A program made the translations under genes and the position numbers. A stretch of 64,000 bases of DNA, from positions 124,001 to 188,000 of the IMG/VR virus record IMGVR_UViG_3300020477_000990; one strand, 5' to 3'. How positions within the stretch are numbered: position 1 is the first letter of the stretch; every line of letters begins with the position of its first letter. The notes beneath the pieces are model-generated. The model ran no database searches and was not told the origin of the DNA. It saw only the letters and a program-made list of their open reading frames with translations. Positions 2,733-47,200 of the stretch are shown piece by piece.

Positions 2733-2787
2733 AGCACGATTACACTACATGATACACTATACGACATACTAGTGAATAGTAAAAGAA

Positions 2788-3185
2788 TTGTACTATCTGT
2801 GCGTATGAGCACACCCTTGAAAGAAGGGTACCCAAAAAGAGAAACCGCGTCTCGGATCACCGGGGAATCACCACCGAAAAAGTAATTAGTATATGTATAT
2901 CCACGGTCCTCTTAACCGTTAAAAACAGGGTAACCACCATTGATCTATGCTTCCCCATCATGGCCTATATTGTCGCAATTGCGGAGCGGTCTGTCTTTGA
3001 ACAATGACCTTCGGTCATTATCTCCGATCACCCGAAGCACTTATGCTAACGGCTAGTCGCACGTTAGCATGGCGTAGCTTTGGCTGGGTCGTCTTTGATC
3101 AATTGCTCCCTGAATATGTGATCACCATGCTGTATATCGGAGCGACAGCTTCGCGACCTGTTAGCTCTAGGGTGTCGCTAACAGT
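2788..3185 (+). ncRNA. Candidate structured RNA
   Basis: Stems TGTGC/GCACA, ACCCTT/AAGGGT, AATGAC-cUUCGg-TCATT, ATGCTAAC/GTTAGCAT, GGAGC(2983)/GCTCC(3105), TGTTAGC/GCTAACA; the cUUCGg loop favours the + strand. Confidence 0.4.
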
Positions 3186-3218
3186 CAGTCTTAGATAGAT
3201 ATACAGCTATATGGTAGA

Positions 3219-3271
3219 GACCCCGCTGTAAACCATAGGGACCCCGCTGTAACATATACAGACCCCGCTGT
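3219..3271 (+). repeat. Three GACCCCGCTGT direct repeats, exact 21-bp period
   Basis: Copies at 3219, 3240, 3261. Confidence 0.95.
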
Positions 3272-3305
3272 GCGGTCTGATGGATTAGTCAGGAATGTAG
3301 CTGTG

Positions 3306-3414
3306 CCGGGACTAGATCTAGTCATTAGCTCCTGATCTCCAGCTTTAGCTCCGGGACTATATGTTGTGGTGGCCTCGATCTATGCCTCTCATGCGTAGAT
3401 TTATTCCGGGACTA
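3306..3414 (+). repeat. Three CCGGGACTA direct repeats
   Basis: Copies at 3306, 3351, 3406; partial CCGGGAC at 3495. Confidence 0.9.
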
Positions 3415-3445
3415 TATATAGTGGTTTTAATTAGACTAATTTTTA

Positions 3446-3474
3446 TTGACTCATTATCGATAATATGCTATATT
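3446..3474 (+). promoter_or_regulatory. sigma70 promoter with extended -10 inside the non-coding element
   Basis: TTGACT 3446-3451, 17-nt spacer containing palindrome ATTATCGATAAT, TGcTATATT ending 3474. Confidence 0.7.
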
Positions 3475-3645
3475 AAATATACAACATGGGTCGCCCGGGA
3501 CACGTATTCCTTACCGTATGGGGTCGGGCGGTCAAGTCGATCAAGCGTACGATCCGGCGATCAGCGTATGACGAGAAACAATGATGGAGCCCAGAGATAA
3601 TAGTAGCTGTATGACGGGGGACGGTAGGGTGATACAGCTACACCT

Positions 3646-3747
3646 TCAAAGAGGCTCAAAGCACTCAAAGAGCTTCAAAGACACTCAAAGGACTCAAAGG
3701 CGCTCAAAGGGGCTCAAAGGGCCTCAAAGGCGGGGCGAGGTTCAAAG
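3646..3747 (+). repeat. Ten TCAAAG repeats phased at about 10 bp
   Basis: Copies at 3646, 3656, 3665, 3675, 3685, 3694, 3704, 3714, 3724, 3742. Confidence 0.95.
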
Positions 3748-3788
3748 AGGCCAGATGGCCCCTCCGGGGCCTATATTGAGATTTAGTC

Positions 3789-3840
3789 TTGAGATGTTGC
3801 AAAAATACAACACATTTTGAGATGTTGTAGAAATACAACA
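3789..3840 (+). repeat. Two 24-bp direct repeats TTGAGATGTTGyArAAATACAACA, each an internal inverted repeat
   Basis: Copies 3789-3812 and 3817-3840 differ at 2 positions. Confidence 0.9.
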
Positions 3841-4169
3841 GGTGTTGTATAAAAGCCACAAGTTACCGTAACTGCTGTAAACACATTTGGAACACAATTG
3901 GAACAAGATTTCAACACAATTGTTAATAGCTTATTGGCCACAATATGTTGTAGGGTGTGTGATAAACGCGACACAACATCTTGTATGAAAAAAGACTAAT
4001 AATATCAATGGTTTAGCACGGTGAAGCTGTAGCTGTGCTATATGTAGTCAGGACCTGACTAGATATTGTGCCATGGTAAAATGGTCAGAGTTCGGCCCAA
4101 CCTTTGAGTAACAGTCTATTTCTTTCTAAATTTTCTCTGCTCTAGTTAATTTTCGACTGGAGTTAATAT

Positions 4170-4198
4170 TATAATAGCATAGGTTTCTATATTGTCAA
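4170..4198 (-). promoter_or_regulatory. Leftward sigma70 promoter with 12-bp operator, no downstream ORF
   Basis: Minus strand TTGACA-atATAGAAACCTATgc-TATTAT. Confidence 0.7.
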
Positions 4199-4221
4199 GA
4201 GGTTAATTTAAATATTTTTGG

Positions 4222-4249
4222 TTGACACATTGCGTAACCGTGCTACAAT
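4222..4249 (+). promoter_or_regulatory. Early sigma70 promoter
   Basis: TTGACA 4222-4227, 16 nt, TGcTACAAT ending 4249. Confidence 0.75.
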
Positions 4250-4322
4250 AAAGAATGAGCCTGTTGTAATGAATCGATAGGTATACTTAGATGAAGCAGG
4301 CTCATTTAAATAGAAAGGAAAT

Positions 4323-4700
4323 ATGTCAAATATAAGAATAGCTTACTACAGTCACAGCGAAACACCTATATCAACACTTACTAATTGTCCAGGAGATGAT
4401 TTAGTTAAGGTAGCTAGAATGTTAGAAACAACTGCGCCAACGTGGGAAGATGCTAAGAAGTATGTACACTTAACGCAACACACGTTGCAAGAACACTATG
4501 GTGTAGATGGTTATGGTGATCCTTTATGTACTAGAATAAGTGGTGTAAAGAATAAAGAAAACTTAATTGGTTTGTTTATTCATATGAGATCTAAATGGCA
4601 CTTTAGTGATAATGGTATTGATTGGATCCCAACTGAAGAAGAATTTCCAGTCGATTCTACCGAGCCTTATAAAGTTGTTAACGGATTTGTTAACGTTTAA
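4323..4700 (+). CDS. Hypothetical early protein
   Basis: SD AGAAAGGA, promoter upstream, terminator downstream. Confidence 0.8.
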   Translation: MSNIRIAYYSHSETPISTLTNCPGDDLVKVARMLETTAPTWEDAKKYVHLTQHTLQEHYGVDGYGDPLCTRISGVKNKENLIGLFIHMRSKWHFSDNGIDWIPTEEEFPVDSTEPYKVVNGFVNV

Positions 4701-4790: not shown

Positions 4791-5399
4791 CTACGCAACT
4801 TTAGTTGCTGTAAACTTTACTAGTTCCGAGGCACAATGTTGCCAAAAGTCTCCATCCAAGTTAACATCATAATTTACTGTTTCCTCAGCCTGCATTCCCT
4901 GTTCGCTATATTCGAAGTCTAAATACTTCTCTAATAGCTTTCTATTAAAGTTACATTCTTCTTCCATGTACTTTAATAAATTTTCTGTAAACCCATCGTC
5001 CGTATAAATTAAGCCATCGCTTTCTTTACTCGGGTTCCTATTAATTAATGCAGAGGGATCGTCAACTCCATCATACCATGTGCCGTCTTTTCCGCTTCCG
5101 TCATAGTATGCATTACCCGTAAGTCCGCCACTCCAATATATGTCATCAGCATTCATTGTACTCCAATCTTTTTTGTCGTACATTTGTCTGCTGTGTTGCG
5201 CCATTAAAACGAGATTGCTAACTTTTACTCCTTTAACTACTCCCTTACTCCATATACTATCTCCGCTAGTCCAAATACGTTTGTTAACGTTTACATCAAA
5301 TCGTAACGTTTCATCGTCTTTATCGTATTCGTAATTAACGTTAGCATTCTGCAAAAATTTAATGCCTGCTTGTACTTCTGCTAATGTATACTTTGCCAT
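4791..5399 (-). CDS. Hypothetical acidic early protein
   Basis: SD AGAAAGGA; own promoter (TTGACA at 5451-5446). Confidence 0.8.
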   Translation of the reverse strand: MAKYTLAEVQAGIKFLQNANVNYEYDKDDETLRFDVNVNKRIWTSGDSIWSKGVVKGVKVSNLVLMAQHSRQMYDKKDWSTMNADDIYWSGGLTGNAYYDGSGKDGTWYDGVDDPSALINRNPSKESDGLIYTDDGFTENLLKYMEEECNFNRKLLEKYLDFEYSEQGMQAEETVNYDVNLDGDFWQHCASELVKFTATKVA

Positions 5400-5451: not shown

Positions 5452-5535
5452 GTCTTTATGCTATTAATTTAATGTTAGTAACAAACCTAAAACTATTACT
5501 AATATTATAAATGTTTTTTTATAGTACATAATTTA

Positions 5536-14940: not shown

Positions 14941-14980
14941 GAGCTATACAGTAGTACTGTTGTATAGAGCTACAATACTA

Positions 14981-15004
14981 AAGGCCCTACGGGGCCTTTT
15001 TTTA
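14981..15004 (+). terminator. Intrinsic terminator closing the early module
   Basis: AGGCCC-tacg-GGGCCT then long T-tract. Confidence 0.85.
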
Positions 15005-16165
15005 TGAAATTTATTTCGTAAAAGAAAAATAAAAAAATAAAATAATTTTCCCCTGGCCGACCATGTAAATATTCGCACCCTAAAATCGAGGAGACCTAGG
15101 CTATGACGGACGTTATATTTTTTGGGTAAAAAAGGAGAGGTGTAATATAAAGGGCGGTGCTAAAAAAATTGCAGTAAAAAATTTTTAGTTAAACATATAG
15201 AAATCTGTAATGTAGTATTTTTAATAGAAAACAACCCATATATCCAATATACCCCGCGGCAAGAACAATGATGAACTCAACAGAAACGACAGTAGATCAA
15301 CTGTTATAAAGATTGTTGTCCCCCATTCTTATGAAGCAGTAAAGAACTGTGAACTCACAATGAGCTACACAATGAATCCACGATGAAGCATTGTGATGAT
15401 GCTTAAAAATTAAAATGCTATAAAAAATAGCATTTATAACAATACCTCGCGGGAGAGGTATAACTTAATGGATCACTATGACGCTAAAATGGAAAACTGT
15501 GGTAACTGTTAAGGGCTCAACAATTATAGGTTTCTAACCTACAAATATCATGTAGCCAAATATAAACCACCATACAAGTGCTATTAAAATCAACACTATT
15601 GTTGCTATGTCATCACGCATAACACTATTTAAGCAGAGGCATTAACAAACAGGACACACGGGCTTTAAAATAGGATTAAAGGCTCTTATATACGTAGTAC
15701 TAGCTATGCTTATGAACTGTACGCAAATATGCGTTAGGCCTGTTTGTAGCATACTGCTACGGTGAAGTGATTAGTCTACGGAGTGTAATAAACTGTAACA
15801 ATCTTAATAGCTATTAGGCATGGTGGGGCATGGTGGTTGCTGTAGTTAAGAGTCTTCTGCGAGAGCTGGAAAAGGAACGTAAGTTCCGTTCCACTAGCGA
15901 GCAGATATATCCGTATGAACGAGCTATATTATATCCTTTTAATAAAGTTTATTAGATTTTGTAATTTTGGTCGCAAATACAAGCAAATACAATTATAACC
16001 GCCGCACATACAAACTATACAATATAAACCCCACATACACCGCAAATACAATATAATACTATATACCCCGCACATACAAAAAATCGCAAATACAAACTAT
16101 GCAATATAAACACCCCTACAAAAAAATTTTCGCATACACATAAAATACAATATACGCCCCTTGCG
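15005..16165. other. Second large non-coding element (candidate terminus / pac / origin)
   Basis: No ORF of 60 aa or more in about 1.2 kb; many short inverted repeats; repeat array at right end. Confidence 0.7.
15973..16150 (+). repeat. GCA(A/C)ATACAA repeat array, strongly A/C-skewed
   Basis: Exact copies at 15973, 15983, 16004, 16042, 16070, 16086 plus degenerate copies. Confidence 0.9.
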
Positions 16166-16176
16166 TAAATACTATT

Positions 16177-21013: not shown

Positions 21014-22195
21014 TTAATCCCTTTTGTAATATTTATATTCAGTAATGTCAGCTAGTTCTGGAAACACGTCTTCAAAGTGTTCATTTCGAAATTTATCTAC
21101 ACGTAGCGTCCAGTCAATAAATTTCATCCAATCATGATATCCATAATCATCTTGATTCATATAATCAATAAATGTTTGTATATCTTTATTTTTATGTTCT
21201 AGTAATTTATTAGAAATAGATCTTTTAGCATCGTTAGGTAAACATTTAATATTATAATGCATTGGATAGTGCAAACTATTTAGATATACACTTATACCAA
21301 ATTCTTTAGCCCATGCTAAAAATTCGGGTATGTATAGCACGTTAAAGACGTTGATTGTATGACATATACCAACAGTAAATTTTTTACTTTGTTTATTTTT
21401 AAATTCATTAATAACGTGTAATGCATTTTTCCATTTAGCAGGATGCCTTTGGTATTCAAATTGCTTACCAATACCATCTATAGAAAATTGAATGTCAACA
21501 GACTTAAAGTGGGGCCATATACTTTGCAATGCTTCATTAGGTAATTGTGTTCCATTTGTATTATAATGAATTCCTATGTTTTTAGCATAACCTTGTTCAA
21601 CGCAAAATTGTAATAACTCAAATTGTTCTTTAATTAAAAAAGGTTCTCCTCCAGTAAAGTCGATATATTCTAATGTTGGTAATAATTCTTTAAGCTCACG
21701 CCAAAACTTTTTGTTAGTTTCTGGCCATCCATGCCTAGTGTGTTTTTCTATAGTGTTATCTTCTTTATCATAATGTTGTTGTTCAGCTATCCATTTACTA
21801 GAAGAATGTGTTCCACATATACGACATTTTAAATTACAAATGTTTCCTAGTTTTAAATCAAGATATTTTAACTTAGGTTCCTGTATTATTTCCTTTGTAA
21901 AATGATGTTGATATTTTTTATTATCTCTAATTCTTTTTGAAACTTTACCACTTGCTTCTTCACTCCAGCATTTAGCACACCCACTAGGTTTTTTACCATT
22001 TAGGAATTCTTTTCTTAGGTTTCTATAATAATCACTATTCCAAGCGTCATCAAATGTGTTATTAGATAAATTGAATGGTTGCTTGTTTTTATCAGTCATG
22101 TTATTATTATACATACAGCAAGGTTTAATCCACCCTGCGGCTGTGGACTCTAATGAGATCCATGGTAATATACAAAATGATTTAGGTACGTGCAT
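21014..22195 (-). CDS. Radical SAM protein with N-terminal twitch/SPASM-like Cys cluster
   Basis: CNLKCRIC; FCILPW...PCC...CAKCW; FTGGEP; YNTNG; start 22195 is 5 nt after TAAATA. Confidence 0.9.
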   Translation of the reverse strand: MHVPKSFCILPWISLESTAAGWIKPCCMYNNNMTDKNKQPFNLSNNTFDDAWNSDYYRNLRKEFLNGKKPSGCAKCWSEEASGKVSKRIRDNKKYQHHFTKEIIQEPKLKYLDLKLGNICNLKCRICGTHSSSKWIAEQQHYDKEDNTIEKHTRHGWPETNKKFWRELKELLPTLEYIDFTGGEPFLIKEQFELLQFCVEQGYAKNIGIHYNTNGTQLPNEALQSIWPHFKSVDIQFSIDGIGKQFEYQRHPAKWKNALHVINEFKNKQSKKFTVGICHTINVFNVLYIPEFLAWAKEFGISVYLNSLHYPMHYNIKCLPNDAKRSISNKLLEHKNKDIQTFIDYMNQDDYGYHDWMKFIDWTLRVDKFRNEHFEDVFPELADITEYKYYKRD

Positions 22196-22227
22196 AACTA
22201 TATTTAACATAGCACAAAAAGGATAAA

Positions 22228-22629
22228 ATGTCTATAGAAGAAAAATATAAGAGCTATCAAGAACAATTAGAAGTACTTACTGAAAATATGGACAAATATC
22301 AGTACCTAATTAACATTGGGTCAAAAAATTCGATGCCAGAAGAATATAAATTAGACTCATTTAAAGTACATGGCTGTATGAGTCAAGTATGGCTAGTACC
22401 AAAATATAATGAAGGTAAAATAACTTTTATGGCTGACTCTGATGCACATATTACTAGAGGAGTAGTTACTATGGTAGCAGATATTTTTAGTGGGTCAACA
22501 GCAAAACAAATACAAGAAACAAATATTGATACTATAATTAATGGACTAGGTTTATTAAGTATTTTATCGCCCAATCGACGTAATGGTGCTTATAATATGT
22601 TTCATAAGGTAAAAGATTATGCCAACTAA
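22228..22629 (+). CDS. sufE: SufE family Fe-S sulfur-transfer protein
   Basis: KVHGCMSQVWL, ADSDAHITRG, LSPNRRNG. Confidence 0.9.
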   Translation: MSIEEKYKSYQEQLEVLTENMDKYQYLINIGSKNSMPEEYKLDSFKVHGCMSQVWLVPKYNEGKITFMADSDAHITRGVVTMVADIFSGSTAKQIQETNIDTIINGLGLLSILSPNRRNGAYNMFHKVKDYAN

Positions 22630-23434
22630 AATAGCTTGTATTGGTTGCAGTTGGACTGAAGGTATTGCAGTAGATGGTCAACTTATGGACCACCAAGATA
22701 CATATCCATATCTATTATCTAAATACTTAAGAGAAAATGCAAAAAATAATGTTATGTATAATGCTGGAAGGTCGGCGGCAGGAACAGAGTATTATCATTT
22801 AGTTACTGATTATCTAATTAAAAAATTTAATCCAGATATCTTTGTTATACAATTTACAACACATGATCGTGGAATATTACCGTTAGATCCAATTGATGAA
22901 AACGAGAAAAGATTAAATTTTGGTTATGATACTATTGATAACACTTATTGTAAAATTTGGGATAACAATAAAAGTATAATGCATTTAAGTCCTGGAATGG
23001 GTGCAAGTGCCAGTAAGCATAGTTCAGAAACACAATGGGATGGTTTAATAGATAAAATTTATAACGAACGAATAAAAGGAAAAATGGCTCCAGAAGTTGA
23101 ATTAGATACATTAAAAAAATATATTGCGTTGTGGTGGGAGCAATCAAAAAATTCAGATATACAAAAATATTTTTATTATTCTCATATGTATAGTTTGCTT
23201 GATTATTTAGAAGAATTAGGAAAGCAAGTAATTCCTTTTCATTGGATGAGATATAAACCAGAATTTAGAACTAAACTTTTTGAATTGAGACCATATCCAT
23301 CTATAGAAGGATTTTTAGGTAATAAACGTTTTAAAGATTTAACTCACGATAACGGATTTCATTTTGGTGTAGAAGGACACACTACGATAGTTCAGGAACT
23401 TTTAGGTCCTGCAATTCAGGAAATAATTCAATAG
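22619..23434 (+). CDS. SGNH/GDSL-like protein
   Basis: CIGCSWTEG, NAGRSAAG, DNGFH. Confidence 0.7.
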   Translation: MPTKIACIGCSWTEGIAVDGQLMDHQDTYPYLLSKYLRENAKNNVMYNAGRSAAGTEYYHLVTDYLIKKFNPDIFVIQFTTHDRGILPLDPIDENEKRLNFGYDTIDNTYCKIWDNNKSIMHLSPGMGASASKHSSETQWDGLIDKIYNERIKGKMAPEVELDTLKKYIALWWEQSKNSDIQKYFYYSHMYSLLDYLEELGKQVIPFHWMRYKPEFRTKLFELRPYPSIEGFLGNKRFKDLTHDNGFHFGVEGHTTIVQELLGPAIQEIIQ

Positions 23435-24611
23435 CATTTTCATTACGTAATTTATCAACCATATTAGTTCTTTCCCAAAACTTTGGAATAAGATGTGATG
23501 AATCTTTTTCATACATAAAGTGAATTAATTTATCATAACGTTTTTCTTTATTGTGTGTATACTTGTCAAACCATTCTTGTTCTTGAACGTATCTTTCTTC
23601 TAAACGTTTTTTCATTTCCATTGGAAGTATTTGTATAGAAAGTTCTTCTGGTACAAACAACGGATTAATCAAACTGCCACCAACAGCGTCAACCCAACCT
23701 TTTTGTATCCATTCATGATGAAAGTCTGGTACATGGAAACTATTATATACATTTAAACAAGTTGCAAGGAACACATATACATCTGGACAAATATCAAACA
23801 TACGTTTTCTATTTTCTTCAACTTGTTCCCATGATTGTCCTTTACGTAAGTATTCTCCACGTTTACCCATGCCATCTAACGAAGCACCTATTTTAACAGA
23901 TTCAAAACGATTCCATATTTCCATAACGTCTAATTTTTTAAATACCATTTGTGAAAAGTTTGTGTTGTACTTTAATCTTACGTGATACATTTTACGTTCA
24001 TCAAGTTTTTTTAGAATTCTATAATGCTCTTCCATAATTAATGGTTCACCACCTGCAAAGTATATTTCTTCTAAGCCGTCCATATATGGTTCAACTTTTT
24101 TCCAAAATGTTTCTTCGTCTTTATAAGGTCTTATAATTTTAGGCTGATCCAATGGGCCATATAATTTTACATTATCTTCATACCAACTTGATGATAAGTC
24201 TGGTCCACAAGTTCTACATTTAAAATTACACAAATTTGAAAATCTAAAATCAATATAAGGTAAGTTAATTTTATCAACTGTACCATCTTCTTTAGTGGTA
24301 CCAATCTTATCAAAATGATTTTCAAATGCTTCGTTGGCCCAAGTTCTTGTTGTATTCAATCCACTTGACTCCATGGAATAACAACGAGTACATTCTTTTG
24401 TTGGTTTATCTTTTAACATTGCTACACGCATTTTCTTTAACTTATCTGAATTCCAAATTTCTTCAAATGATTGATCTTTTAAGTTACCAAGTATCTCATT
24501 CATAGGAGCCATACAACAAGGTAACACTCTACCATCTGGCCATGAGTGTAAATGTGTCCAAGGTAACATACAAAATCGTTTTGATTTTTTTAATGCGTAA
24601 TCTTTATCCAT
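23382..24611 (-). CDS. Radical SAM protein with N-terminal twitch/SPASM-like Cys cluster
   Basis: CNFKCRTC; FCMLPW...PCC...CTRC; FAGGEP. Confidence 0.9.
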   Translation of the reverse strand: MDKDYALKKSKRFCMLPWTHLHSWPDGRVLPCCMAPMNEILGNLKDQSFEEIWNSDKLKKMRVAMLKDKPTKECTRCYSMESSGLNTTRTWANEAFENHFDKIGTTKEDGTVDKINLPYIDFRFSNLCNFKCRTCGPDLSSSWYEDNVKLYGPLDQPKIIRPYKDEETFWKKVEPYMDGLEEIYFAGGEPLIMEEHYRILKKLDERKMYHVRLKYNTNFSQMVFKKLDVMEIWNRFESVKIGASLDGMGKRGEYLRKGQSWEQVEENRKRMFDICPDVYVFLATCLNVYNSFHVPDFHHEWIQKGWVDAVGGSLINPLFVPEELSIQILPMEMKKRLEERYVQEQEWFDKYTHNKEKRYDKLIHFMYEKDSSHLIPKFWERTNMVDKLRNENAIELFPELQDLKVPELS

Positions 24612-33869: not shown

Positions 33870-34343
33870 ATGGCTTATAATACACCAGTTAATTACAGAA
33901 CTAATGACGTAACGGCATCCGGAACGATCTCTCCTTCTAGTAGTGGAGCCGAGTCAAGTAGCAACTATGTTACTGAAAGAATTTATAAAGGCTTTAGTTC
34001 TAATAATCCAAATGCTGTAAACAATATGCTTTATGATGCAGATTTAATTAAACAAGATATATATAACCATTTTATGACAGCTAAAGGTGAAAGAGTGATG
34101 CTACCTAACTTTGGTAGCATTATTTGGGATTACTTGTATGACCCACTTGACAGCCAAACAAAAAGTATAGTTGAAGAAGATGCTAGAAGTATTGTTGCCG
34201 CTGACCCTAGAGTAGAATTATTAAATATAGAGGTTGTTGGTTTTGAACAAGGAATAGTAGTTAATATTAGATTAAACATTTTACCTCAAAACATGGTTGA
34301 AGATATGGCCATTACATTTAACAACAATGGGAGTGCAATATAA
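33870..34343 (+). CDS. Baseplate wedge subunit, T4 gp25/GPW-like
   Basis: YKGFSS...DLIKQDIYNHFMTAKGERVMLPNFGSIIWDYLYDP...DPRV. Confidence 0.9.
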   Translation: MAYNTPVNYRTNDVTASGTISPSSSGAESSSNYVTERIYKGFSSNNPNAVNNMLYDADLIKQDIYNHFMTAKGERVMLPNFGSIIWDYLYDPLDSQTKSIVEEDARSIVAADPRVELLNIEVVGFEQGIVVNIRLNILPQNMVEDMAITFNNNGSAI

Positions 34344-37300
34344 TGGGACAACTAGTTAGACAAAGTAATTTATTTTCCGCAGAAGATTGGAAAGTAGTTT
34401 ATCGTAGTTTTAAAGATGCTGATTTTAAATCATATGACTTTGATACTATTCGAGCATCAATGTTAAATTATATTAGTAGAAACTATCCAGAGAATTTTAA
34501 TGACTATATTAATTCATCTGAATTTATAGCTATACTTGATTTGTTAGCTTTCTTAGGTCAAAGTTTATCATTTAGAATTGATATTAATGCTAGAGAGAAT
34601 TTTATTGATACAGCAACAAGAAGAGATTCAATTTTAAAACTAGCAAATATGTTAAGCTACAAACCAAAAAGAAATGTTCCGGCACGTGGCTTATTAAAAT
34701 TATCAGTAATTAAAACAAGTGAACCAATTACTGATTCATTAGGAAATAATTTAAGTAATACTGAAATTAAATGGAATGATCCAAACAATGCTAATTGGTA
34801 TGAACAATTTATTGCTGTATTAAATTCTTCGTTTATTACAACAAATAAATTTGGAAAACCAACACAGTCAGCAAAGATTAGTTCTATAACAAATGACTTA
34901 TATACTTTTAATAATACTAAAGCAATTTCAGTAACACAACCATTTAATAGTAAAGTAAACAATAAATCATATTCATTTGATGTTGTACCAGCAACATTTA
35001 ATACAGCAGGTTATATCGAAGAACAAACACCTGATCCATTAAATGCTTATAATTTAATTTATAAAAATGATGGAAAAGGATTTGATAGTGCCAATACTGG
35101 ATTTTTTGTTTATTTTAAAGAAGGTTCGCTATCATATAAAGATTTTAATTTTGATTCTCCGGTTGAAGATAGAGTGCAATCAATTGAAGTTAATGACATT
35201 AATAATTTAGATGTTTGGGTACAAGAAATTAACTCATCTGGGTTAACAGAAAAAACATGGTCAAAAGTTCCAACGTTATCAGGACAAAATATAATTTATA
35301 ATAGTTTAGCATTAGGAACTAGAACAATATACGAAGTACAATCAAAAGTTAATGATCAAGTTGATATTAAATTTTCAGATGGACAATTTGGTAATATTCC
35401 AGTTGGCTTATATAGAATTTGGTATAGAACTAGTGCAACCAAAGGAGAAGAAATTTCTCCATCAGATATTAAAGGAAAAGGTGTTTCGTTTAGTTATGTA
35501 AACCAAGAAGGCCAAACTTATGATTTAACAGTTCAATTTAATCTTGAATATAATGTTTCGAATTCATTTTCAAGAGAAACAATTGATGAAGTTAAAATAA
35601 ATGCAGGATCAAGTTACTATACACAAGATAGAATGATTAATGCAGAAGACTATAATGTATTTCCAATTACAAAAGTTTCTGGAATACAAAAGTTAAAAGC
35701 ATTAAACAAAACACACGCAGGGCATTCAAGATTTATTGACATTCAAGATCCGACAGGTACAGTTGCAAATGTTAATTGCGTTGGTGAAGATGGAATTTTA
35801 TATAAAGAACCAAATAATACTGAAAAGGTTTTATCAGTAATTGATACAAGTTCATATGATAGTATGGTATTAGAAGTTGAAAAATTAATTCAATCTATTC
35901 AAACACAAAACTTTTATTTTGATCCATATAAAAAAGCAATCGAGGCAATACCTATTAGTGGATATCCTTCTAAATTTGTTTTCTTATCAGCAGGTGATGA
36001 CATTGTATATTGGAGACCAATGCCAGTTGCAACATCAGGATATTATGGATATATTACACAATCGGCTCCAGCTGAAAGCGAATCTACTGCAAAAAATAAT
36101 ACAAACTTAAAGAAAGTTTGGAAAGCACCAACAACAGATAAGCATGGACTAATACGTCCAGGTTCAAGAATTGAATTTATTGATGACTATAATAATCCAA
36201 CAAAAACAATTTGGGCAACAGTTAAAGGTGTTACAGCAAATGGTGATCCTGCTAATTTAACAAATGGACCAATTCAATTAAGTGAATCAATCCCAGCTGG
36301 TTATAGAGCTAGAGCTATTATTCCAAATATAAGAACAACATTTACAACTACTGAAAGAACAGCAATTAGATCTAAATTAAGTGAGTCAACTGCAATTTTA
36401 AGCAAATTTGGTCTTGGGTATAGTTATTATAATTCTGCAACAAAAGAAGAGAGTTGGTATATTATTGATGCAAATAAAGTTGATGTATCAAGTGAGTTTA
36501 ATGTAGTTAACAATACAATTGGTGGCGGATCACAAGGAACAAATAACGATTCAAGTTGGTTAGTAAAAGCAGAGTTTACAGAAAAAGGTGCAAACACAAA
36601 TGCTAAATTTACATTTACATCAAGAGGATTAGATTATATATTTCAATCAACCAATGATGTTAGATTCTTTTATGTTAAAGATTATAAAACATTAGATAGT
36701 GCAACAGGTTTAACTATTCAAGATAAAATCGATATTTTAGCTGATGTAAACAGTAAAATTGAAGAAGGTACTGGAGCATCTGTTTTAGCAACAATTGATG
36801 TATCATTAACAGCACATCAGGCAACTACAGTTGGCAAAGATGAAATTGTAACTCAAGCTAATTCAGGAGCAAAAGGAAAAGTTAAAACGGCAGTAGCAGG
36901 TGGACAAACAATTGAGTTAACAGGAGTTTCCGGAACGTTTACAACTAACGTAGCTGATACATTAACAGGATCAGCAACAGGGGCGTTAAGTGCCTATGTA
37001 ACAAACGTAACAGGAGGTGCAGTTACAGGATTTACTAATACATCAGGAGATACATTATCGTATACTACTCCAGTTGGATTAAATTATACTACAGCACCTA
37101 AAATTTCAATGTCAGGAGGACTTGGTAGCGGAGCATCTGCAATTGCAACAGTTCATAAAGGTTTAGTAATAGCAATGCCTATTATTGATGGTGGATCAGC
37201 ATACAAGTTTCCACCAACGGTTACAATAACACCAGAGTCAATTGGTGCTAAATTAGATGAAACTATTTCTTTATCAGTAGTTGAGAATGCTTCAGAACAA

Positions 37301-38293
37301 GATGGTTATGTCGACGATAGAAAAGTAAAAGTTTCAACTTATGATTCAGATGAAGATGGTATGCCAGATCTTCCTTTAGCTATTGACAAGTTAGTTCAAG
37401 ACACATCTAATTCTAAAAATTTTATATTCTTTGAAAACTATACTGACTTTGATAACTATGTTTATTATAAATTAACAACATCAGTAACTCAACGTTCAGC
37501 ATTAACTAATAGTGGTATTGAATTTTTAACAACTACTAATAAATTTTATAGCGGTGGTGTATTACAAACAACAACAGGCTCTGAAGGAGCATACCAGGCA
37601 ACAATAGGAACTACAACTTATAAAGCATTTATTGGTAGATCATATTATACACCAGCAGGAATAAGTGATCCAATGTTTTTCCATTGGAAACATACTGCAC
37701 CTAGAGACCAAAGAATTGATCCAAGTATTAGCAATATTATCGAATTGATAGTATTAACTTCAACGTATTACGATAATGTTTTAAGTTGGACAGCTAATGA
37801 AAAATCAGTTAGTGAGTTTCCAGAAGAACCAACAGTAGAAGAATTGAATGAAATGTTTTCTTCTAATTTAAATTCATATAAAGCAATTGGAGATCAAATA
37901 ATTTATACTCCTGCGAAATTTAAATTATTGTTTGGTTCAACAGCGTCAGCAAATTTACAAGGTACATTTAAAATTGTAAAATCAGTAGGATCTACAATGA
38001 CAGATAATGAAATTAAATCAAGAACAATAACTGCCATTGATACATTTTTTGATATTACAAATTGGAATTATGGTGAAAGTTTTTATTATACAGAATTATG
38101 TGCATATATCCACAGCCAACTAGCTACACAAATAAGTTCAGTTGTTATTGTTGGTTCTGATGCAGAATCCAAGTTTGGAGATTTATTTGAGATTGTTTCT
38201 GATTCAAACGAGTTATTTTATTCAACAGCAACAGTTGACAATGTTGAAATCGTAAATGCATATACAGATCAAAATTTAAAAAAGGGGTCGTAG
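34343..38293 (+). CDS. Baseplate wedge protein, T4 gp6-like, with inserted repeats
   Basis: DFKSYDFDTIRASM...SSEFIAILDLLAF...ENFIDTATRRDSILKLA; QDRMINAEDY. Confidence 0.85.
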   Translation: MGQLVRQSNLFSAEDWKVVYRSFKDADFKSYDFDTIRASMLNYISRNYPENFNDYINSSEFIAILDLLAFLGQSLSFRIDINARENFIDTATRRDSILKLANMLSYKPKRNVPARGLLKLSVIKTSEPITDSLGNNLSNTEIKWNDPNNANWYEQFIAVLNSSFITTNKFGKPTQSAKISSITNDLYTFNNTKAISVTQPFNSKVNNKSYSFDVVPATFNTAGYIEEQTPDPLNAYNLIYKNDGKGFDSANTGFFVYFKEGSLSYKDFNFDSPVEDRVQSIEVNDINNLDVWVQEINSSGLTEKTWSKVPTLSGQNIIYNSLALGTRTIYEVQSKVNDQVDIKFSDGQFGNIPVGLYRIWYRTSATKGEEISPSDIKGKGVSFSYVNQEGQTYDLTVQFNLEYNVSNSFSRETIDEVKINAGSSYYTQDRMINAEDYNVFPITKVSGIQKLKALNKTHAGHSRFIDIQDPTGTVANVNCVGEDGILYKEPNNTEKVLSVIDTSSYDSMVLEVEKLIQSIQTQNFYFDPYKKAIEAIPISGYPSKFVFLSAGDDIVYWRPMPVATSGYYGYITQSAPAESESTAKNNTNLKKVWKAPTTDKHGLIRPGSRIEFIDDYNNPTKTIWATVKGVTANGDPANLTNGPIQLSESIPAGYRARAIIPNIRTTFTTTERTAIRSKLSESTAILSKFGLGYSYYNSATKEESWYIIDANKVDVSSEFNVVNNTIGGGSQGTNNDSSWLVKAEFTEKGANTNAKFTFTSRGLDYIFQSTNDVRFFYVKDYKTLDSATGLTIQDKIDILADVNSKIEEGTGASVLATIDVSLTAHQATTVGKDEIVTQANSGAKGKVKTAVAGGQTIELTGVSGTFTTNVADTLTGSATGALSAYVTNVTGGAVTGFTNTSGDTLSYTTPVGLNYTTAPKISMSGGLGSGASAIATVHKGLVIAMPIIDGGSAYKFPPTVTITPESIGAKLDETISLSVVENASEQDGYVDDRKVKVSTYDSDEDGMPDLPLAIDKLVQDTSNSKNFIFFENYTDFDNYVYYKLTTSVTQRSALTNSGIEFLTTTNKFYSGGVLQTTTGSEGAYQATIGTTTYKAFIGRSYYTPAGISDPMFFHWKHTAPRDQRIDPSISNIIELIVLTSTYYDNVLSWTANEKSVSEFPEEPTVEELNEMFSSNLNSYKAIGDQIIYTPAKFKLLFGSTASANLQGTFKIVKSVGSTMTDNEIKSRTITAIDTFFDITNWNYGESFYYTELCAYIHSQLATQISSVVIVGSDAESKFGDLFEIVSDSNELFYSTATVDNVEIVNAYTDQNLKKGS

Positions 38294-38296
38294 GCA

Positions 38297-41200
38297 ATGG
38301 CTGAGCAATTTGTTGCATCAAAACAATTACCAGTAGTTTTACAATCAACAAAGTTAAAAAACTTTTTTGATTCTACAGTTGACCAATGGTTTAAAAATGA
38401 AGACAATGAATTCACTCATGGATTTGTTGGAAGACGTGAAGGTAGAATTTTTGAACCAAAAAAAGATGCCTACTTAGGTGAACCGTCAGTTGATAGATTT
38501 AATTATCAACTTGAACCTTCGGTTGTAGTTAGAGATAATACTACACAAGGAATTTCATATCAAACTACATACGATGACTTTGTTAATAAATTAAGATTTG
38601 ATGGCGGCCAAATTCTAAATCATAAAAAATTATTTGAAGAAGATTATTATTCTTTTGCTCCACCTATTGACATTGATAAATTTTTAAACTATGCTAATTA
38701 TTATTGGTATCCAACTAAAGATGATTTGTCAACAGAAACAAGTGGAGTATTTCCAAGTTTACCAGCAATTGTAGTTGACGGGTCTGGTGCTACACCTATT
38801 GATCCAGCAACAGATATTATTGGAAAGCAAACATATACAGCACCAGATGCCACGGTGTTTACAAATGGTTTACAAATAAAATTTGGTCAATCAGTTACTA
38901 ATGATGCATATAAATTTAGACATACAATTACTGCAATAAATTTAAATGGCGGTGGATCTCAGTATGCAGTAAATGATAAAATTATAGTTTCAACTGTTAC
39001 TATTGGACACGTTACAAGTATTAATGCAGGGGGAACAATCACAGGAGTAGAATTAACAAATCCAGTTCTTGGTGATGGTGTTACTCCAACAGCGGTAACA
39101 ATCACAACTGCAAGTGGTAATGGTGCATTATTAACTGTTACTACATCACAAACTGATATTACTTACATAATTGAAGGTGTAGGAACAGAAATTAAATTAA
39201 TTGATATAAAAGATTTAAGGAACTTAAATGGACTAACAACTTCGTCAAAAGATTATCTAACAATGCAACGAGGTTGTAAAGATGGTAACATTTGGTCAAA
39301 AACAAACGGATGGGTACATAAAAATACATTAGACAACTATCCTAGTGTAACAACTACAACAGAAGAACAACACCTATGGGATACAGAAGGATGGGCAGGT
39401 CTTCAAACTTGGGATAGTATAACAGTATCGTCTACAACTGCATTTACAAAAACAACCGGTAGAAGAGCTACAAGACCAATTATTGAATTTAATAGTAATA
39501 TGGAATTATACGATTATGGAAAAAATCATATACTTGATGTTACAGTTATTGAAGATACATTAACAAAAACACAAATAGAATCTTATGCTAATATAACTAT
39601 TGATGGTAGGCAAATTCAAAATAGAGATACTATATTATTTCCAAGTGCGGCCAGCCAAGATGATTATGTAGCTTGGGATGGAAACTTGTGGGATCATGAT
39701 ACTGACTCAGATATATCAACAGGTGGCGGTGGACAAACTGGTGGTGATTTAGGTTGGGACGTATCTAGTTCAGCTTTTACAATTGAAGGATCTATTTGGC
39801 AAGTATCTGGTGTAGGAACAGCTCTAACACTTACACAGGTTATTACTAGTGTAAATGAAAATGATAAAGTTTATATTGATAAAGGTACAAAATATGGTAG
39901 TACTGAATGGTACTATGATGGATACAATTGGAATCAAGCACAATTAAAATCTAAAGTAAATATTGCACCATTGTTTAATTTATTTGATAATAATAAAGTT
40001 ATATTAAATGATACAGGAATATATCCATCGTCAACGTTTACAGGTTCAAAAGTATTTGGCTATAAAGTTGGTTCAGGAACCAACGATGCTGAATTAGGAT
40101 TTCCACTATCATATGTGTCTGGTAGTGGTCAAAGTGATATTGAGTTTTGTAACTATCTTAATGTCGATTCATACACATATAATACCTCAACTGCGATATC
40201 AGGATACAAGTTTTATAAGCAATTCTTGTATCCTGAAACTATTGCTAAAACTACAAACTATGAAGTAAATATAAATCCTAGTCAAAGAAATACAGCAAAC
40301 AATGTATTTTATATAAATGGTGAAGAAAGCCCAATATTGATTTTACAAAGAGGAGACACATATAATTTTAAATTTAGTTCTCCAGAAAGTGGAAGTACAG
40401 GTTACACAGGAGTAAATCATCCATTTTATATTTCAACAGGAACTCCTTGGTCATCGGGAACATATACTGGTGAATATACAACTGGTGTAACAGGATCTAG
40501 AGCATACTATGGTGGTGCTTATAGTACATTAGAATTTATAGTTCCGTCAAATGCTCCAGATACATTGTACTATCATTCTGCTACAAGTAATAATCCTGTT
40601 AAATTAGTTATAGTTGATAATCCTATTACTAAAATTAATGAAGCTACAGAAACATTTTATAGAAATGAATGGAACAAAAATTTAGGAAGTAAAAAATTAA
40701 AACAACGTTTAGTTCAAGAACATACAGTTTCAAATACAAATTTAACTACTAAACCAACACTAGAAGTTATACCAACATCTATTATAGATATGGAAGTATA
40801 TAAAAATGGAATTAGACAAAAGTTTGGTACAGATTATACTACAACTGCAAGTGTTATAATTAACTTTACAACTGCATTAGTTGAAAATGATTTTATTAAA
40901 ATTTATTACGAGACAAATGATAATACTCCAATTCGTCAAGTAAACTATTTTGAAATACCAAAGAACCTTGAATCAAATGCTTCAAATGAAGAAGTTGTTT
41001 CAGGAACATATTCAGAATTTTTCCAACACTTTGAATCTATAGTTCAAAACCAAATTGGGTTTACTGGTGATGTAAGTGGAGCAAATAATTATCGCGATAC
41101 TGAAAAAGATTTAGGAAAAGGTAAAGTTATTTTACAACATGATGGTTCACTAATGAAAGTAATGGCATTTGCTAATAATGATGACCTGGATATTATATCA

Positions 41201-44200
41201 TCAATAAGATATGTAAAAAATAGATATCAAGAGTTTCAATTAAAATTTTTAAATGCTGTAAATAAAATTCAAGTATCACAAGATGCTTCTTTGTTAACAA
41301 CTTCACAAATTGTTGATAAAGCAATTAAAAATATTACTATAGATAAAATTGCAACTGATCCATTTACATATTCATTTATGATGGCTAGTGGTGATAGATA
41401 TACTTCAGAATCTCATACTATTACAACAACTAATTATACTTGGGGAAATACAAACACATTCTTACAAAGTAGTGATACACAAGAAGTATTTAATCAAGAG
41501 CCTGGCTTAACAATTGCATCAGCATATGATCCAAAAAATGATTATGATAGTAAAGCATTATACGTTTATAAAAATAATGTATTAATGACATATAATCATG
41601 ATTATATTGTAAGTTATTCTTCATCTGGAACAAAAATTATCTTTATAGGATATGCGGCAAATAAACCAAAAGTTAATGATGTAATTTCAATTAGATATTA
41701 TACAACAATTCAACCAACTTGGATACCACCTACTCCAGCAAAACTAGGAGCGGCAAAAGTTTACCAACCGGTTGAAATATCTGATACTATAACATATTCA
41801 AGTGGAACTAGAAACTTTATACAATGTCATGATGGGTCATTTGTTTTAAAATATAATGATTTAAGAGATACTGCATTATTAGAATTAGAAAAAAGAATTT
41901 ATAACACAATCAATAGAAGATTTACTTCTAGGGATTATGTTCCATTATTAGAAATTAATCAAAAACAACCAAACTATTTTAATTCAACTAGTTGGTCTAG
42001 AAATGATATTATTAATTTAATGCGTCCAATATTTACAAGATGGGCATCAGAAAATGCATTAAACTATCATGAGAATACTGGTTATAATAATGTTCTAACA
42101 TTAACAGGAGTTTCTGGTACATTTAAAGTTGGAGAATCTGTTTCTGGTGCAAGTTCTAAAGCAAAAGGTGTAATTACAAAAATTGCAAGTAATGTAATAA
42201 CTATAAACCAAGTTATTGATAGTTTCCAACTTAATGAAAAAATAACTGGTGCAACAAGTGGTGCAGAAGGTACAACAGATCCAAATGGTGGTATTACTAT
42301 TGATTGGAAAGTAATGAATTACTCTTCATTAAAAGATCCAAATGGAAATAGTTTACCAGGACACTGGCGTGGTATGTATCGTTGGTTCTATGGAACAGAT
42401 AGACCACATACTCATCCATGGGAAATGTTAGGCTTTGCACAAAAACCAATTTGGTGGGATAATTATTATTCTTGGACGGCATCGTCGACAAGAGCAAAAT
42501 TAATAAGTGATGTTGAACAAGGTATTATTAGATCAGGCTTACGTGAAAACTATACTGATAAATCATATCTTAACGCAAATAATGTTTATAAAAAACCAAA
42601 CTTTGCGTCATATGTTCCGGTTGATAATACTGGAAAACTATTAAGTCCAAAAGAAATAGGAATTATTTCAGATAATCCTACAGAATATAATTCACAACTT
42701 GATTGGAAATTTGGAGATGGTGCTCCAGTTGAAAATGCATTTGTTGTTTCTCCGGTATATCAATATGCAATACAAAAAATATTATATTTGACAGCACCAG
42801 GTTTATATGTTGACTTGCTTTGGAATTCAAATGATATATTAAAATCATCAGCTGATGCAACTCAAATTATTGACTCTGTAAGTGGTAAAAGACCTAACAA
42901 TAAAAACTATTATGTCCATAGAGAAGTAGATGCTAATAGTATAACATATAACAGAGCTGGAGTACAAAACTTTTTAGTTGAGTATTTAAATTATGTAGGT
43001 AAGTCAGTTACAGATTCATTTGGTAATGTAATTAGAAACCTACAAACAAATTTATCATATCGTTGTGCAGGGTTTATAGACTCATCAACACTTAAAATTG
43101 AATCACAAGCATATGACTCAGTAAGTAATTCAACTAGCATTGTAATTCCAACAGAAGATATTAATATATCATTACATACAGGTGGAAGCATTGATGAAGT
43201 ATCATATAGTGGTTTTATTGTTCAGGTAGTTGAGCAAGGATATAAGATTTTTGGATACGATATAGTACATCCATACTTTAATGTACTTAGACCAATGATT
43301 TCAGGTAGATCAAAAAAACTTAGAATTGGTGGAAAAGAAGTTTCTCCAGTTTCTTATAAACCTGGAACAACGTATCATACAGATGAAATTGTTAAACATG
43401 AAGACAAATATTATCAAAGCATCACTACTCAAGTAACATTAACAACTGATACTAATCCAGATTTACAAAAATGGAAAGTGCTTAAAGTTTTACCAACAGT
43501 AGGTGGAACAGAAGTAGACCACTATTATGATTTTGATGAATCTAATGTATATCAAATTGATTATGGAACTGTATATAAAACTAGACAACAAGTTTATGAT
43601 GCAATAGTAGGATATGGAAAATATTTAGAATTAGTTGGATGGGACTTTAGTGAGTTTAATGTTGATATTGGAGAAAATAAAAATTGGGATTATAGTGCCA
43701 AAGAATTTTTATTTTGGAGTTTAGGAAAATGGGAAAAAGGAAATTATGTTACATTAAGTCCTAGTGCTGATAAATTAAAATTTATACCAGCTTCAGGTGT
43801 TGTCCAAAGTATTAAAGATATTAATAATGGTGTATATAGTGCATTAAACAAAGAAGGTTTTGGACTAGATTCAAAACAACTAGATGTTATACGTGATGAT
43901 GACATGGTAACAATATCACAAAAAGATGGAATTGGAATTTATGGATTAAGATTATCAGTTAAAGAAACTGAGCATATGATTACATTAGAAAACAAAACTA
44001 TCTTTAATGATACAATTTATAATACAATATTAGCACAAAGACAGCCACGTGTAAAAATTAATACAACTAGAACATTAGGATGGCATGGTAAACTTGAAGC
44101 AGATGGTTATATTATAAGTGGAACGTCATTGCTTAATAACTTTGAAAAATCAGTAACTGATTCTGGAAAATATTATGATATAGAATCTTCTCTTGTAGCT

Positions 44201-47200
44201 ACTAATTTTAGAGATTCAGCTATGCACTTAATTGGATACCAAGAAAGAAATTATTTAACTAATTTACAAATTAGTAAAACAAATCAAGTTAAGTTTTATC
44301 AAGGAATGATAAAACAAAAAGGTACACAAAATAGTATTGATAGATTATTAAGATCAACAACTGTAAGTACTGATCAAACATTTGATACATATGAAGAATG
44401 GGCATTTAAAGTTGGTGAATTTGGCTCAACAGCTTTTGATCAAAAAATTGAATTAAGATTAAGAGCAAACGAAGTTGTTAGTGATCCACAAACATTTGAG
44501 TTTTTATTACCATCAGATGCATCAACAACTTCAGGCTATGATAGTCCAACTGATGATGTAATTACAATTGATATTGATGATACAGTACGTTGGTTGAAAA
44601 AACCTAAAGGTGAAAAAACGTTAGCTAATTTATGGCCAGTAGTGTCTACAGTTAATACAGTAGTTCCTACATCAGGTTATGTACATTATGATGATCCAAC
44701 TTATAGAGCATTGAATTCAAATGCACTTGCTAACGTTTATTCATCAGAAACTTCAAATATAGCAATTGGGTCAACAACTTGGGTAGCAAAAGATGATGTA
44801 GCTGGAAGAGATTGGAATGCATATAAATTATATGATACCGGAGATACTATTGATAACGTAGTATCAAATGGTGATGCCAATACTGCAATGAAAGTTACAG
44901 TATCTGGTACAGGCTCAAGTATTGGAGTAGCAAAAGATTTAATTATACATAAAACATATGACGGTGATGGAACACTTGTTATGGATCCTACTAGTTGGGG
45001 CACACACAAAATAACATTATCAACTGCAACGCCAACGGCACCTACAATTACAATTCCATTTTCTGATGTAGCAGGTAGTGGTGCAGAAATGGCAGTAGGG
45101 AATATTAATGGAACGGTATCAACAGTAACAGTTACAGCAGGTGGTGATGGCTTTGCTGTAGGAGATGTAATTTCATTCTCAGGCAGTAATGGAGCAGGTG
45201 GACAAATGACTGTTAATAAAGTTGCCGGCGGAGCAGGTGCTACAGCATCGGCAGTTATAGCAGATACTTTCCCAATTACTTCAATACAAGTTTTAGAACA
45301 AGGTACAGGTTACAGTTCTGCAACTGTTAATATTTCAGGTGGTGGGGGTTCTGGTGCTACTGCAACAGCAACTATTGCCGGCGGTAAAATTACTGCTATT
45401 ACATTAACTGGTGCAGGTTCAGGATATACATATCAGCCTACGATTACAATTACAGGTGATGGAGATGACGCAACTGCTTTTGCTACACTTGGATCAAAAG
45501 CAGATGGACAAATTACATCAATTACTGTTAGCGGAGGCGGAACTGGTTATACAGCAACACCAACAGTTAAAATTACAGACGCTTCTGGTACAGGTGCAAC
45601 TGCAACGGCAGTTATGTCAGCTGGAGCGGTTGCAAGTGTTACAATAACTAATTCAGGTTCAGGATATACAGCACCAACAATTTCATTTACTGGCCCATTA
45701 AGTGGTGCAACTACAGGATCAGAACTAACACTTAATAATGGTGGAGATAATTATGCAGAAGCACCAACGGCATATTCAGTAGTTGATTCTTCAGGCACAA
45801 CAAAAACATCCGGAGTACATTATACACCAGCAACATTTACATATACAGGTGATGGTGCTAGTGGAGTATTTGGTGAAATAAAAGATATTACAATTACAGC
45901 AGGTGGTTCAAATTACCAATCACCAAGTATTAAAATTATTAATGCATCAGGAACAACAGTACATACATTAACAACACCAACTAACATTACACTTACATCA
46001 GGATCTATTACTGCGGTAACAGTTCCAACTGGAGCATGGAATAAAGGATTTAGTGCAGGAGTAATAAGTACTGCAACTGGAAAAATAACAGTTACAGATA
46101 CTAAAGCAAATCATACAGTTAACTTGTCTCCGTCATTAGCTAAAGTACACGCATTAACATCATTAACAGCAAACGTAACTACAGCATTTGATGGGACACC
46201 ATCTGTAACATTAGAAAAATCAGAAGACAATGGAGCATCATGGAGTGCATTATCTACTGCCGCTGTTGATTTAACTACCGTTGCTTCAGCAAACGTTAAT
46301 GTTACAGGAACAATAACTGACAATGCAAACGCAATTGTTAGAGCAAGTATTTCAGTTTCAACAGGAACAACTGGAAATGTTTCTTTATCATTAAATTATA
46401 CTAAAAAAGAATACGCAATAACTAAAAATGGTAATGCTGAATATATTTCAACTGCTGATAATACAACAATTAATTCATCTGGTATTAAATTATTAGATTG
46501 GAAAGATGTTAGATTAAACAATGCGTTAGCAACTGATAAAGCACACGTTGTAACTAGTACAGCAACAACACTTACAAATTTCTTAACAGGAACAGGTTTA
46601 AGCAATAGTGTTTGGACAGAAGGTGCTCTTGTTTGGTTAGATGATGACTTTACTGGTAAGTGGGGAGTATATAGATATACTGCCAATGCAACAATAGTTT
46701 CAAGTTATAATAATATACGTGGAAGTGAACCTGCAAGTTTTTCAGCGGCAGGTGGTACATGGATTTTACATAGTGGAGTAGATTACAGTAACACTTCACA
46801 AACTACTACATCATATTTTGCAAAAACAAAACGTAGACAAAAAGATAGAATAGATACAAAACAATTTAATAAAACGGTTATGTATGATGATAGAAGTCAT
46901 CAAGTTGATTTAAGTATGAATATATTTGATCCATTAAAAGGAATTTTACCTGCATCTGCAGATAGAGAAATCTCATACAAGTCAGAGTTAGATCCTGCAA
47001 TATATAATAATCATAGTGATACTACTTTAATTAGTACAAGTAATCCATGGAAGGATGACTATGTTGGAAAAGTTTGGTGGGATCAATCAACGGCAAGATT
47101 TATTGAATATGAAAGTCATGATAATGATTATAGAAGAACACATTGGGGTCGTTTGTTTGATGGAGCGTCAATTGACGTTTATGAGTGGGTTAAATCAACT

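Follow-up and report, generated by a model that had tools for sequence, protein, structure and literature searches.

A conserved array of TCAAAG boxes in marine jumbo phages, most likely the middle of a previously undescribed structured non-coding RNA

A group of marine jumbo phages carries, in a long gene-free stretch of the genome, a conserved array of 9-13 short boxes, which most likely forms the central module of a previously undescribed, structured non-coding RNA made early in infection, and which probably serves as a multi-site docking platform for an RNA-binding protein rather than as a DNA centromere or packaging site. The array was found in a 64,000-nt window (the whole stretch of DNA that was analysed, bases 124001-188000 of the complete 328,149-bp record IMGVR_UViG_3300020477_000990), in which a first-pass annotation had pointed to ten TCAAAG boxes at 3646-3747 and had interpreted them as a centromere-like, terminase-binding or initiator array, i.e. 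a DNA site for a protein filament or for DNA wrapping. The observation was found to be exact. The interpretation, however, is only partly supported: the array behaves as a selected multi-site binding platform, but the specific DNA readings are not supported, and the evidence points to RNA, a possibility that had not been considered.

The array and its genomic context

TCAAAG occurs on the + strand at positions 3646, 3656, 3665, 3675, 3685, 3694, 3704, 3714, 3724 and 3742, which gives spacings of 10,9,10,10,9,10,10,10,18. Over the whole window the hexamer is not enriched (44 hits on both strands, 45.8 expected) and only 11 other + strand copies occur in 64 kb, hence the Poisson probability of finding ten copies within 102 bp is, by our estimate, about 1e-24. 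The extended unit is YTCAAAGR plus a 3-4-nt linker, the + strand of the array is 65% purine, and an identical 11-mer, TTCAAAGAGGC, brackets the array at 3645 and 3741. The linkers vary, so this is not a slippage microsatellite, as the first-pass annotation had also stated; all other TCAAAG arrays found in IMG/VR are perfect 9- or 10-bp tandem repeats or coding repeats and are therefore not comparable. Two corrections to the original description are needed. The boxes had been placed on one helical face, but the mean core spacing is 9.75 bp, which for B-DNA of 10.5 bp per turn gives about -26 degrees per step and about -206 degrees over the nine regularly spaced boxes, so they do not share a face. 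The inverted copies (CTTTGA) noted at 2995, 3093 and 4102 are present, but only the one at 4102 is conserved in other clades, while those at 2995 and 3093 are specific to the window's own clade.

The phage is a marine jumbo myophage with about 31% GC, distantly related (about 40% amino-acid identity in the baseplate wedge protein) to the Rak2, PA5oct, Atu_ph07 and SCTP-2 group. The assembly closes on itself with a 75-bp overlap only, which does not reveal the physical ends. The array lies in a GC-rich island (2733-4322, 43% GC), the longest stretch of the genome without a convincing gene, and independent gene callers place no gene there in 7 of the 8 contigs that span it. The island also holds three copies of GACCCCGCTGT at 21-nt spacing (3215-3271; two copies at 30 nt in other clades) and three strong sigma70-type promoter matches. 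Just upstream of the promoter that precedes the array there are three quasi-palindromic sites (GACTA..TAGTC / ..GTGG; 3305-3425) at 45- and 55-bp spacing, which are possible operator sites; the spacing is kept in a related locus (L136, positions 5010-5137; 45 and 55-56 bp), but the orientation is opposite in another clade (clade D), which would fit operators for a dimeric regulator. The densest GATC window of the whole genome (2001-3600, i.e. genome 126.0-127.6 kb, 17 sites in 1.6 kb) overlaps the island, which has 11 sites against about 6 expected; this may reflect methylation-linked control.

The flanking genes have no known family. The 125-aa gene downstream (4323-4700, + strand) is conserved, but its confident structural model (pLDDT 84) has no structural match (best Z 3.3) and gives no clue to function. 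Its promoter, TTGACA-16-TACAAT, lies at 4222-4249 on the + strand. A leftward sigma70-type promoter, TTGACA-16-TATTAT (4171-4198, - strand), is conserved, and both hexamers and the 16-bp spacing are kept in two related loci, L136 and L153. The RNA that it would produce has at positions +54 to +81 an invariant block, GGTCAGAGTTCGGCCCAACCTTTGAGTA (4083-4110), which holds the conserved inverted box (4102-4107). Read in that sense, the block contains a single CUCAAAGG box next to a G-U-rich hairpin, so a second RNA may share the same binding site.

Conservation among relatives

Searches with blastn and tblastn against 50,697 deposited phage records found no match for the island or for the 125-aa gene, and searches with the flanking 286-aa and 170-aa genes revealed no relatives. 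However, metagenome contigs from several ocean samples carry near-identical and 84-89% identical versions, in which every hexamer is intact while the linkers differ and the units are reshuffled. Homologs of the 125-aa protein led to clades with only 54-58% protein identity that carry the same island with the same order of elements, and exact matches to the invariant 26-nt block (4083-4108) then retrieved the island from 6 IMG/VR and 107 metagenome contigs. Among 35 distinct arrays the box is TCAA[A>T>G>C]G, degenerate copies (TCATAG, TCAGAG) fill the apparent double gaps, and the number of boxes is 9-13 (mode 10, then 11), apart from two irregular arrays with 4-5 strict matches. Of 316 intervals, 268 (85%) are 9 or 10 nt. 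A copy number that is freely variable and unphased among relatives had been named beforehand as an argument against a binding array, and this is not what we observe. A still more distant clade has eight boxes of a different sequence (TCACGA) at 10-13-nt spacing, again spanning about 90 bp, in an analogous gene-free stretch and followed directly by T-runs.

Sequence signals of a probable transcribed, folded RNA

A sigma70-type promoter, TTGACT-17-TATATT with an extended -10 TG, is found at 3446-3474 (+), with a predicted RNA start at about 3481. In all lineages with enough flank a promoter of the form TTGAC(A/T)-17-TA(T/C)A(A/T)T is conserved, at 159-171 nt before the array in all but one of them (185 nt in that one), and its hexamers are kept while the spacer has diverged in every clade. 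In 26 of 35 distinct lineages a canonical + strand intrinsic terminator (GGGGTGTTGCA..TGCAACACCC plus five to eight T) lies 65-160 nt after the array, while 12 have a mostly weaker site on the - strand. In the window's own clade our terminator scan found none, but the homologous region holds TGTTG..CAACA hairpins (3795-3850, +), the first of which (3795-3812) is followed by TTTT at 3815-3818 and is the likely, weak, terminator. Immediately after the array there is a GC hairpin, GGCCCC-TCC-GGGGCC (3757-3771, +), where relatives have a GC-rich segment plus a T-run instead (T8 in the related locus L133).

The segment between the predicted start and the array (3481-3645, +) folds into a structured leader with helices 3487-3491/3589-3593, 3493-3495/3527-3529 and 3536-3543/3550-3558 and a pre-array hairpin 3603-3615/3629-3641. 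In 9 sequences the helix 3536-3558 has 7 of 8 pairs changed on both sides, with a covariation score of 0.62 against 0.23 for the shuffles (0 of 500 reach it) and at most 0.22 for slid controls, and in 30 sequences it keeps a U-G pair in 30 of 30, while neighbouring pairs switch among AU, UA and CG. The left half of the island is structured too. A long hairpin of about 20 pairs at 3029-3086 (+) has 98.8% of cells paired, 11 of 20 pairs changed on both sides and two U-G pairs in 13 of 13 sequences, with a covariation score of 0.31 against 0.105 for the shuffles (0 of 500 reach it) and at most 0.08 for slid controls. A short hairpin at 3003-3019 (+), AATGACC-TTC-GGTCATT, has a stem with at least six different sequences in other clades (TAGATCA/TGATCTA, CTGTGC/GCACAG, TATCAC/GTGATA, TTGAAC/GTTCAA, TAGAACC/GGTTCTA), and a compensatory C-G to G-C change is seen in the related locus L127. 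G-U pairs would be A-C mismatches on the other strand, so these are + strand RNA structures and not DNA cruciforms.

Within the array, thermodynamic folding of 16 lineages predicts that the boxes are unpaired with probability 0.53 and the linkers with probability 0.23, whereas the antisense strand gives 0.41 and 0.42. Adjacent linkers close a box 74 times of 281, against 58.9 +- 5.6 for shuffled linker orders (P about 0.005); this signal is modest (z about 2.7), but it is seen only on the + strand and only when G-U pairs count, as the - strand gives 19 and Watson-Crick pairs alone give 14. The high GC content of the island is typical of structured RNA in AT-rich genomes. Scans of the island in two clades against Rfam 15 gave only chance-level hits (best E 0.13-0.68, well below the gathering scores), and no tRNA or tmRNA was found.

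Some frame is open across the array on the + strand in every lineage (ORF 3581-3820, 79 aa, in the window), which would correspond to a short basic repeat peptide. However, the frame is open because neither the box nor the G/C-rich linkers can form a stop codon, units of 9 and 10 nt shift the frame, and length differences between lineages are not multiples of three. Start codons, frames and lengths (44-180 aa) all differ and only one of the contigs' gene callers called it, hence we reject the coding reading as most improbable.

Three metatranscriptome runs hold parts of the stretch, with contigs at 2962-3113 (contig X18, which includes the short hairpin), 3346-3518, 3586-3653, 4255-4606 and 4270-4446. 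Contig X19 begins at 4255, where the promoter at 4222-4249 predicts the 5' end of the mRNA of the 125-aa gene, so these sigma70-type signals appear to work in the natural host. The contigs in the island cover parts of the leader and of the left half of the island but none covers the body of the array; they are thin (depth 4-5), carry no strand information and, in the absence of a silent control stretch, could be DNA carry-over, so that we regard them as supporting evidence and not as proof. One of them (3346-3518) runs across the promoter, indicating that the transcription map is more complex than one unit.

A predicted box-array RNA and its candidate partner

The explanation that we favour, with moderate confidence, is that host RNA polymerase starts at about 3481, transcribes a structured leader of roughly 165 nt and then the array of roughly 100 nt, and stops at the TGTTG..CAACA hairpin with a U-run (about 3795-3818), which would give an RNA of about 340 nt here and up to about 450 nt in relatives. 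In this RNA the G/C-rich linkers would pair with each other, largely through G-U pairs, and hold the UCAA(N)G boxes unpaired or in small loops, thus offering 10-13 equivalent, evenly spaced docking sites. We infer that it binds many copies, or a ring or filament, of one RNA-binding protein, acting as a sponge or as an assembly scaffold early in infection. The array, its conservation, the promoter and terminator signatures, the covarying + strand structure and the absence of a conserved ORF are established by the analysis, while it is by inference only that we propose that the RNA is made, that its boxes bind a protein, and which protein this might be. It must be noted that the tight 9-10-nt spacing and the near-constant number of boxes resemble helical phasing on DNA, or ring binding, more than known sponge RNAs, whose site number and spacing vary.

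The phage has neither CsrA nor TRAP, and no consistent match to IHF or CsrA motifs (including GGA) was seen by eye in the boxes. The phage does, however, encode its own Hfq (67.5 bits; 68 aa; genome 7162-7341; locus L269, 1483-1689), and Hfq genes are almost absent from deposited phage records. It belongs to a tight clade of 68-aa marine proteins, and its nearest cellular relatives are alphaproteobacterial. In all phage copies the stretch TIFLINGVKL is invariant, the His of YKHAIST is Asn, and the basic rim is replaced by IDKN-like residues; by analogy with established Hfq structural work, these positions are assigned to the distal, proximal and rim RNA-binding surfaces, respectively. In related contigs (locus L273, 2484-2666) a 60-aa gene with an Hc1 histone-like domain (PF07432) follows directly after hfq, which looks like a small cluster of nucleic-acid-binding genes. 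The phage Hfq, alone or competing with host Hfq, is the best candidate partner, but no more than a candidate: each box contains one A-A-N triplet whose third position is the only variable box position, which fits the A-R-N rule of the distal face, the part of the phage Hfq that stays invariant. Several Hfq hexamers can bind one RNA through ARN blocks of varying spacing (PMC9890229), and CrcZ sequesters Hfq through A-rich motifs (PMC4063720). On the other hand, known distal-face sites are runs of contiguous ARN triplets and not single triplets 9-10 nt apart (PMC9890229), and the co-occurrence of hfq with the island rests on this one genome, as the IMG/VR contigs are fragments of 21-31%.

A more far-reaching, and on present evidence rather unlikely, possibility is that the RNA and the phage Hfq form a dedicated viral ribonucleoprotein, in which each box places one A-A-N triplet into a distal-face pocket, so that about two hexamers (12 pockets) are threaded by one RNA. 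The phage Hfq, having lost the canonical proximal-face histidine and the basic rim, would then be specialised for this RNA, the particle could capture or displace host Hfq-dependent regulation early in infection, and the 1.1-kb structured region would be a new class of large ornate phage RNA.

Among known systems, the protein-sponge small RNAs (CsrB/RsmZ for CsrA, CrcZ for Hfq) are similar in being independent promoter-to-terminator units without an ORF, a property that the array shares by sequence signals, and in carrying many copies of a short motif in loops or single-stranded stretches separated by short paired segments, which for the array is predicted and not probed. The phage-encoded array differs in the motif (UCAA(N)G instead of GGA or AAnAAnAA), in the far more regular number (mode 10-11) and spacing of sites, and in the covarying 165-nt leader, and no sequence or Rfam relationship was found. 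The TRAP-binding sites of the Bacillus trp leader, 11 (G/U)AG triplets with 2-3-nt spacers wrapped around an 11-subunit ring, likewise combine short conserved boxes with non-conserved spacers of fixed length, on RNA and in a number near that of a protein ring; however, box and period differ (6+3-4 nt here, 3+2-3 nt in TRAP sites), and the array is not an attenuator before a gene. The large ornate phage-associated RNAs GOLLD and ROOL (PMC12286853) are long, GC-rich, heavily structured non-coding regions of unknown function carried by phages, but neither Rfam model matched, these RNAs are not known to have a phased box array, and the structured region described here may be one RNA or several.

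A literature search revealed no paper that describes this element and none that uses the phrase "phage-encoded Hfq". These phages are widespread, as the island was found in more than 110 contigs from many ocean samples, and yet their longest non-coding region matches no described RNA family or DNA element. If our reading is right, it adds a phage-encoded, highly regular multi-site RNA to the short list of sponge or scaffold RNAs and pairs it with one of the very few phage-encoded Hfq proteins, i.e. a testable case of a virus bringing both an RNA chaperone and a possible matching RNA to take over host post-transcriptional control. It also shows that phased short repeats in a phage genome should not be read as DNA sites by default.

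Alternative explanations

The main rival, which we consider possible but less likely, is that the array works as double-stranded DNA, where a phage or host protein would bind the direct repeats cooperatively and coil around or wrap the DNA, as a replication-initiator array, a packaging site for a ring-shaped small terminase or a partition centromere. It is kept alive by the conserved number of boxes, the 9-10-bp spacing and the total length near 100 bp, also approached in the distant TCACGA clade, by the GACCCCGCTGT repeats and the quasi-palindromic sites whose orientation flips between clades, and by the GATC excess of about twofold, as P1 pac and oriC are rich in GATC, R1 parC has ten 11-bp repeats, and ring-shaped small terminases have 8-12 subunits. 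However, a profile search for tubulin (TubZ/PhuZ, PF00091) gave no hit in the 328-kb genome, although the model detects its targets in 13 control genomes; the ParM model (StbA_N, PF06406) gave no hit either, but it was silent in all control genomes too and is thus uninformative, and only a sub-threshold CbiA/ParA-like hit was found. R1 parC, other ribbon-helix-helix centromeres and tubC share with the array about ten short direct repeats at roughly one helical turn, but here there is no adjacent partition operon, and the array lies about 165 nt downstream of a promoter, within a predicted transcription unit and with no ORF following it, instead of overlapping an operon promoter. The neighbouring genes show no partition or DNA-binding family or fold. 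A small-terminase recognition (pac) site lies in or next to the terminase genes, and packaging series start there; TerL lies at genome position 228.6 kb, about 100 kb away, TerS was not identified, and contig breaks cluster at about 5463-5534, where many independent metagenome contigs of this phage end or rearrange in what looks like a strain-variable spot, and not at the array. The arrays of CCTAAAG-type heptamers beside the T7 terminal repeat at the concatemer junction, a motif for which the literature search returned no paper, similarly repeat a short A-rich box about ten times with variable linkers in a non-coding region of a lytic phage, but they flank the physical genome ends, while nothing in the assembled contigs places an end at the island. 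Iterons of replication origins are usually 17-22 bp long and lie next to an AT-rich unwinding element and usually a rep gene; here the boxes are 6-8 bp at 9-10-bp spacing in a GC-rich segment, no rep-like neighbour was found, and GATC is enriched about twofold. The helical drift of the boxes argues against a double-stranded-DNA role, and the covarying G-U-containing hairpins and the + strand linker complementarity would remain unexplained. Should the DNA reading nevertheless prevail, the element would mark the origin or packaging site of an uncultured jumbo-phage group, for which none is known.

A transcription-primed origin, in which a purine-rich transcript from the promoter at 3446-3474 stays hybridised over the array as an R-loop, as in the T4 oriF/oriG origins or ColE1 RNA II, would combine both views and is suggested by the purine bias, by the conserved promoter at a fixed distance with an AT-rich stretch around it, and by the iteron-like repeats and GATC enrichment in the island. 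We find it doubtful, because the conserved terminator and the covarying leader indicate a discrete folded RNA rather than a primer, and because an R-loop does not need an exact hexamer or exposed boxes; cumulative GC skew shows no turning point here, as it follows gene direction, and is not informative on the origin. It is still less likely that the boxes act by RNA-RNA pairing, as a decoy for an RNA with CUUUGA-type sequences such as CCUUUGAG in the invariant block, which would be exposed if that block were transcribed rightward. A 14-nt, 86% complementary match does link 3723-3736 with 4095-4108, and the block is invariant in over 110 contigs, but position 5 of the box varies freely (A, T, G or C) without any matching change in the single invariant partner, the block lies beyond the terminator, and the conserved leftward promoter would transcribe it in the sense that yields a box and not an anti-box.

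Other features of the genome

The second-largest gene-free stretch of the genome (1.2 kb, window 14941-16176) holds 29- and 39-nt tandem repeats (unit CGCACATACAAGCAAATACAATATAAACC) at 15972-16111 and could be another regulatory or origin-like region. A 3986-aa ORF (38297-50257) lies directly after the 1316-aa baseplate wedge gene (34343-38293). The window also contains several radical-SAM genes (21014-24611 and 57682-59088), and just upstream of it, at about 122.66 kb of the genome, lie a ribosomal protein L31 homolog (PF01197) and a nitroreductase, which together look like auxiliary metabolic or translation genes.
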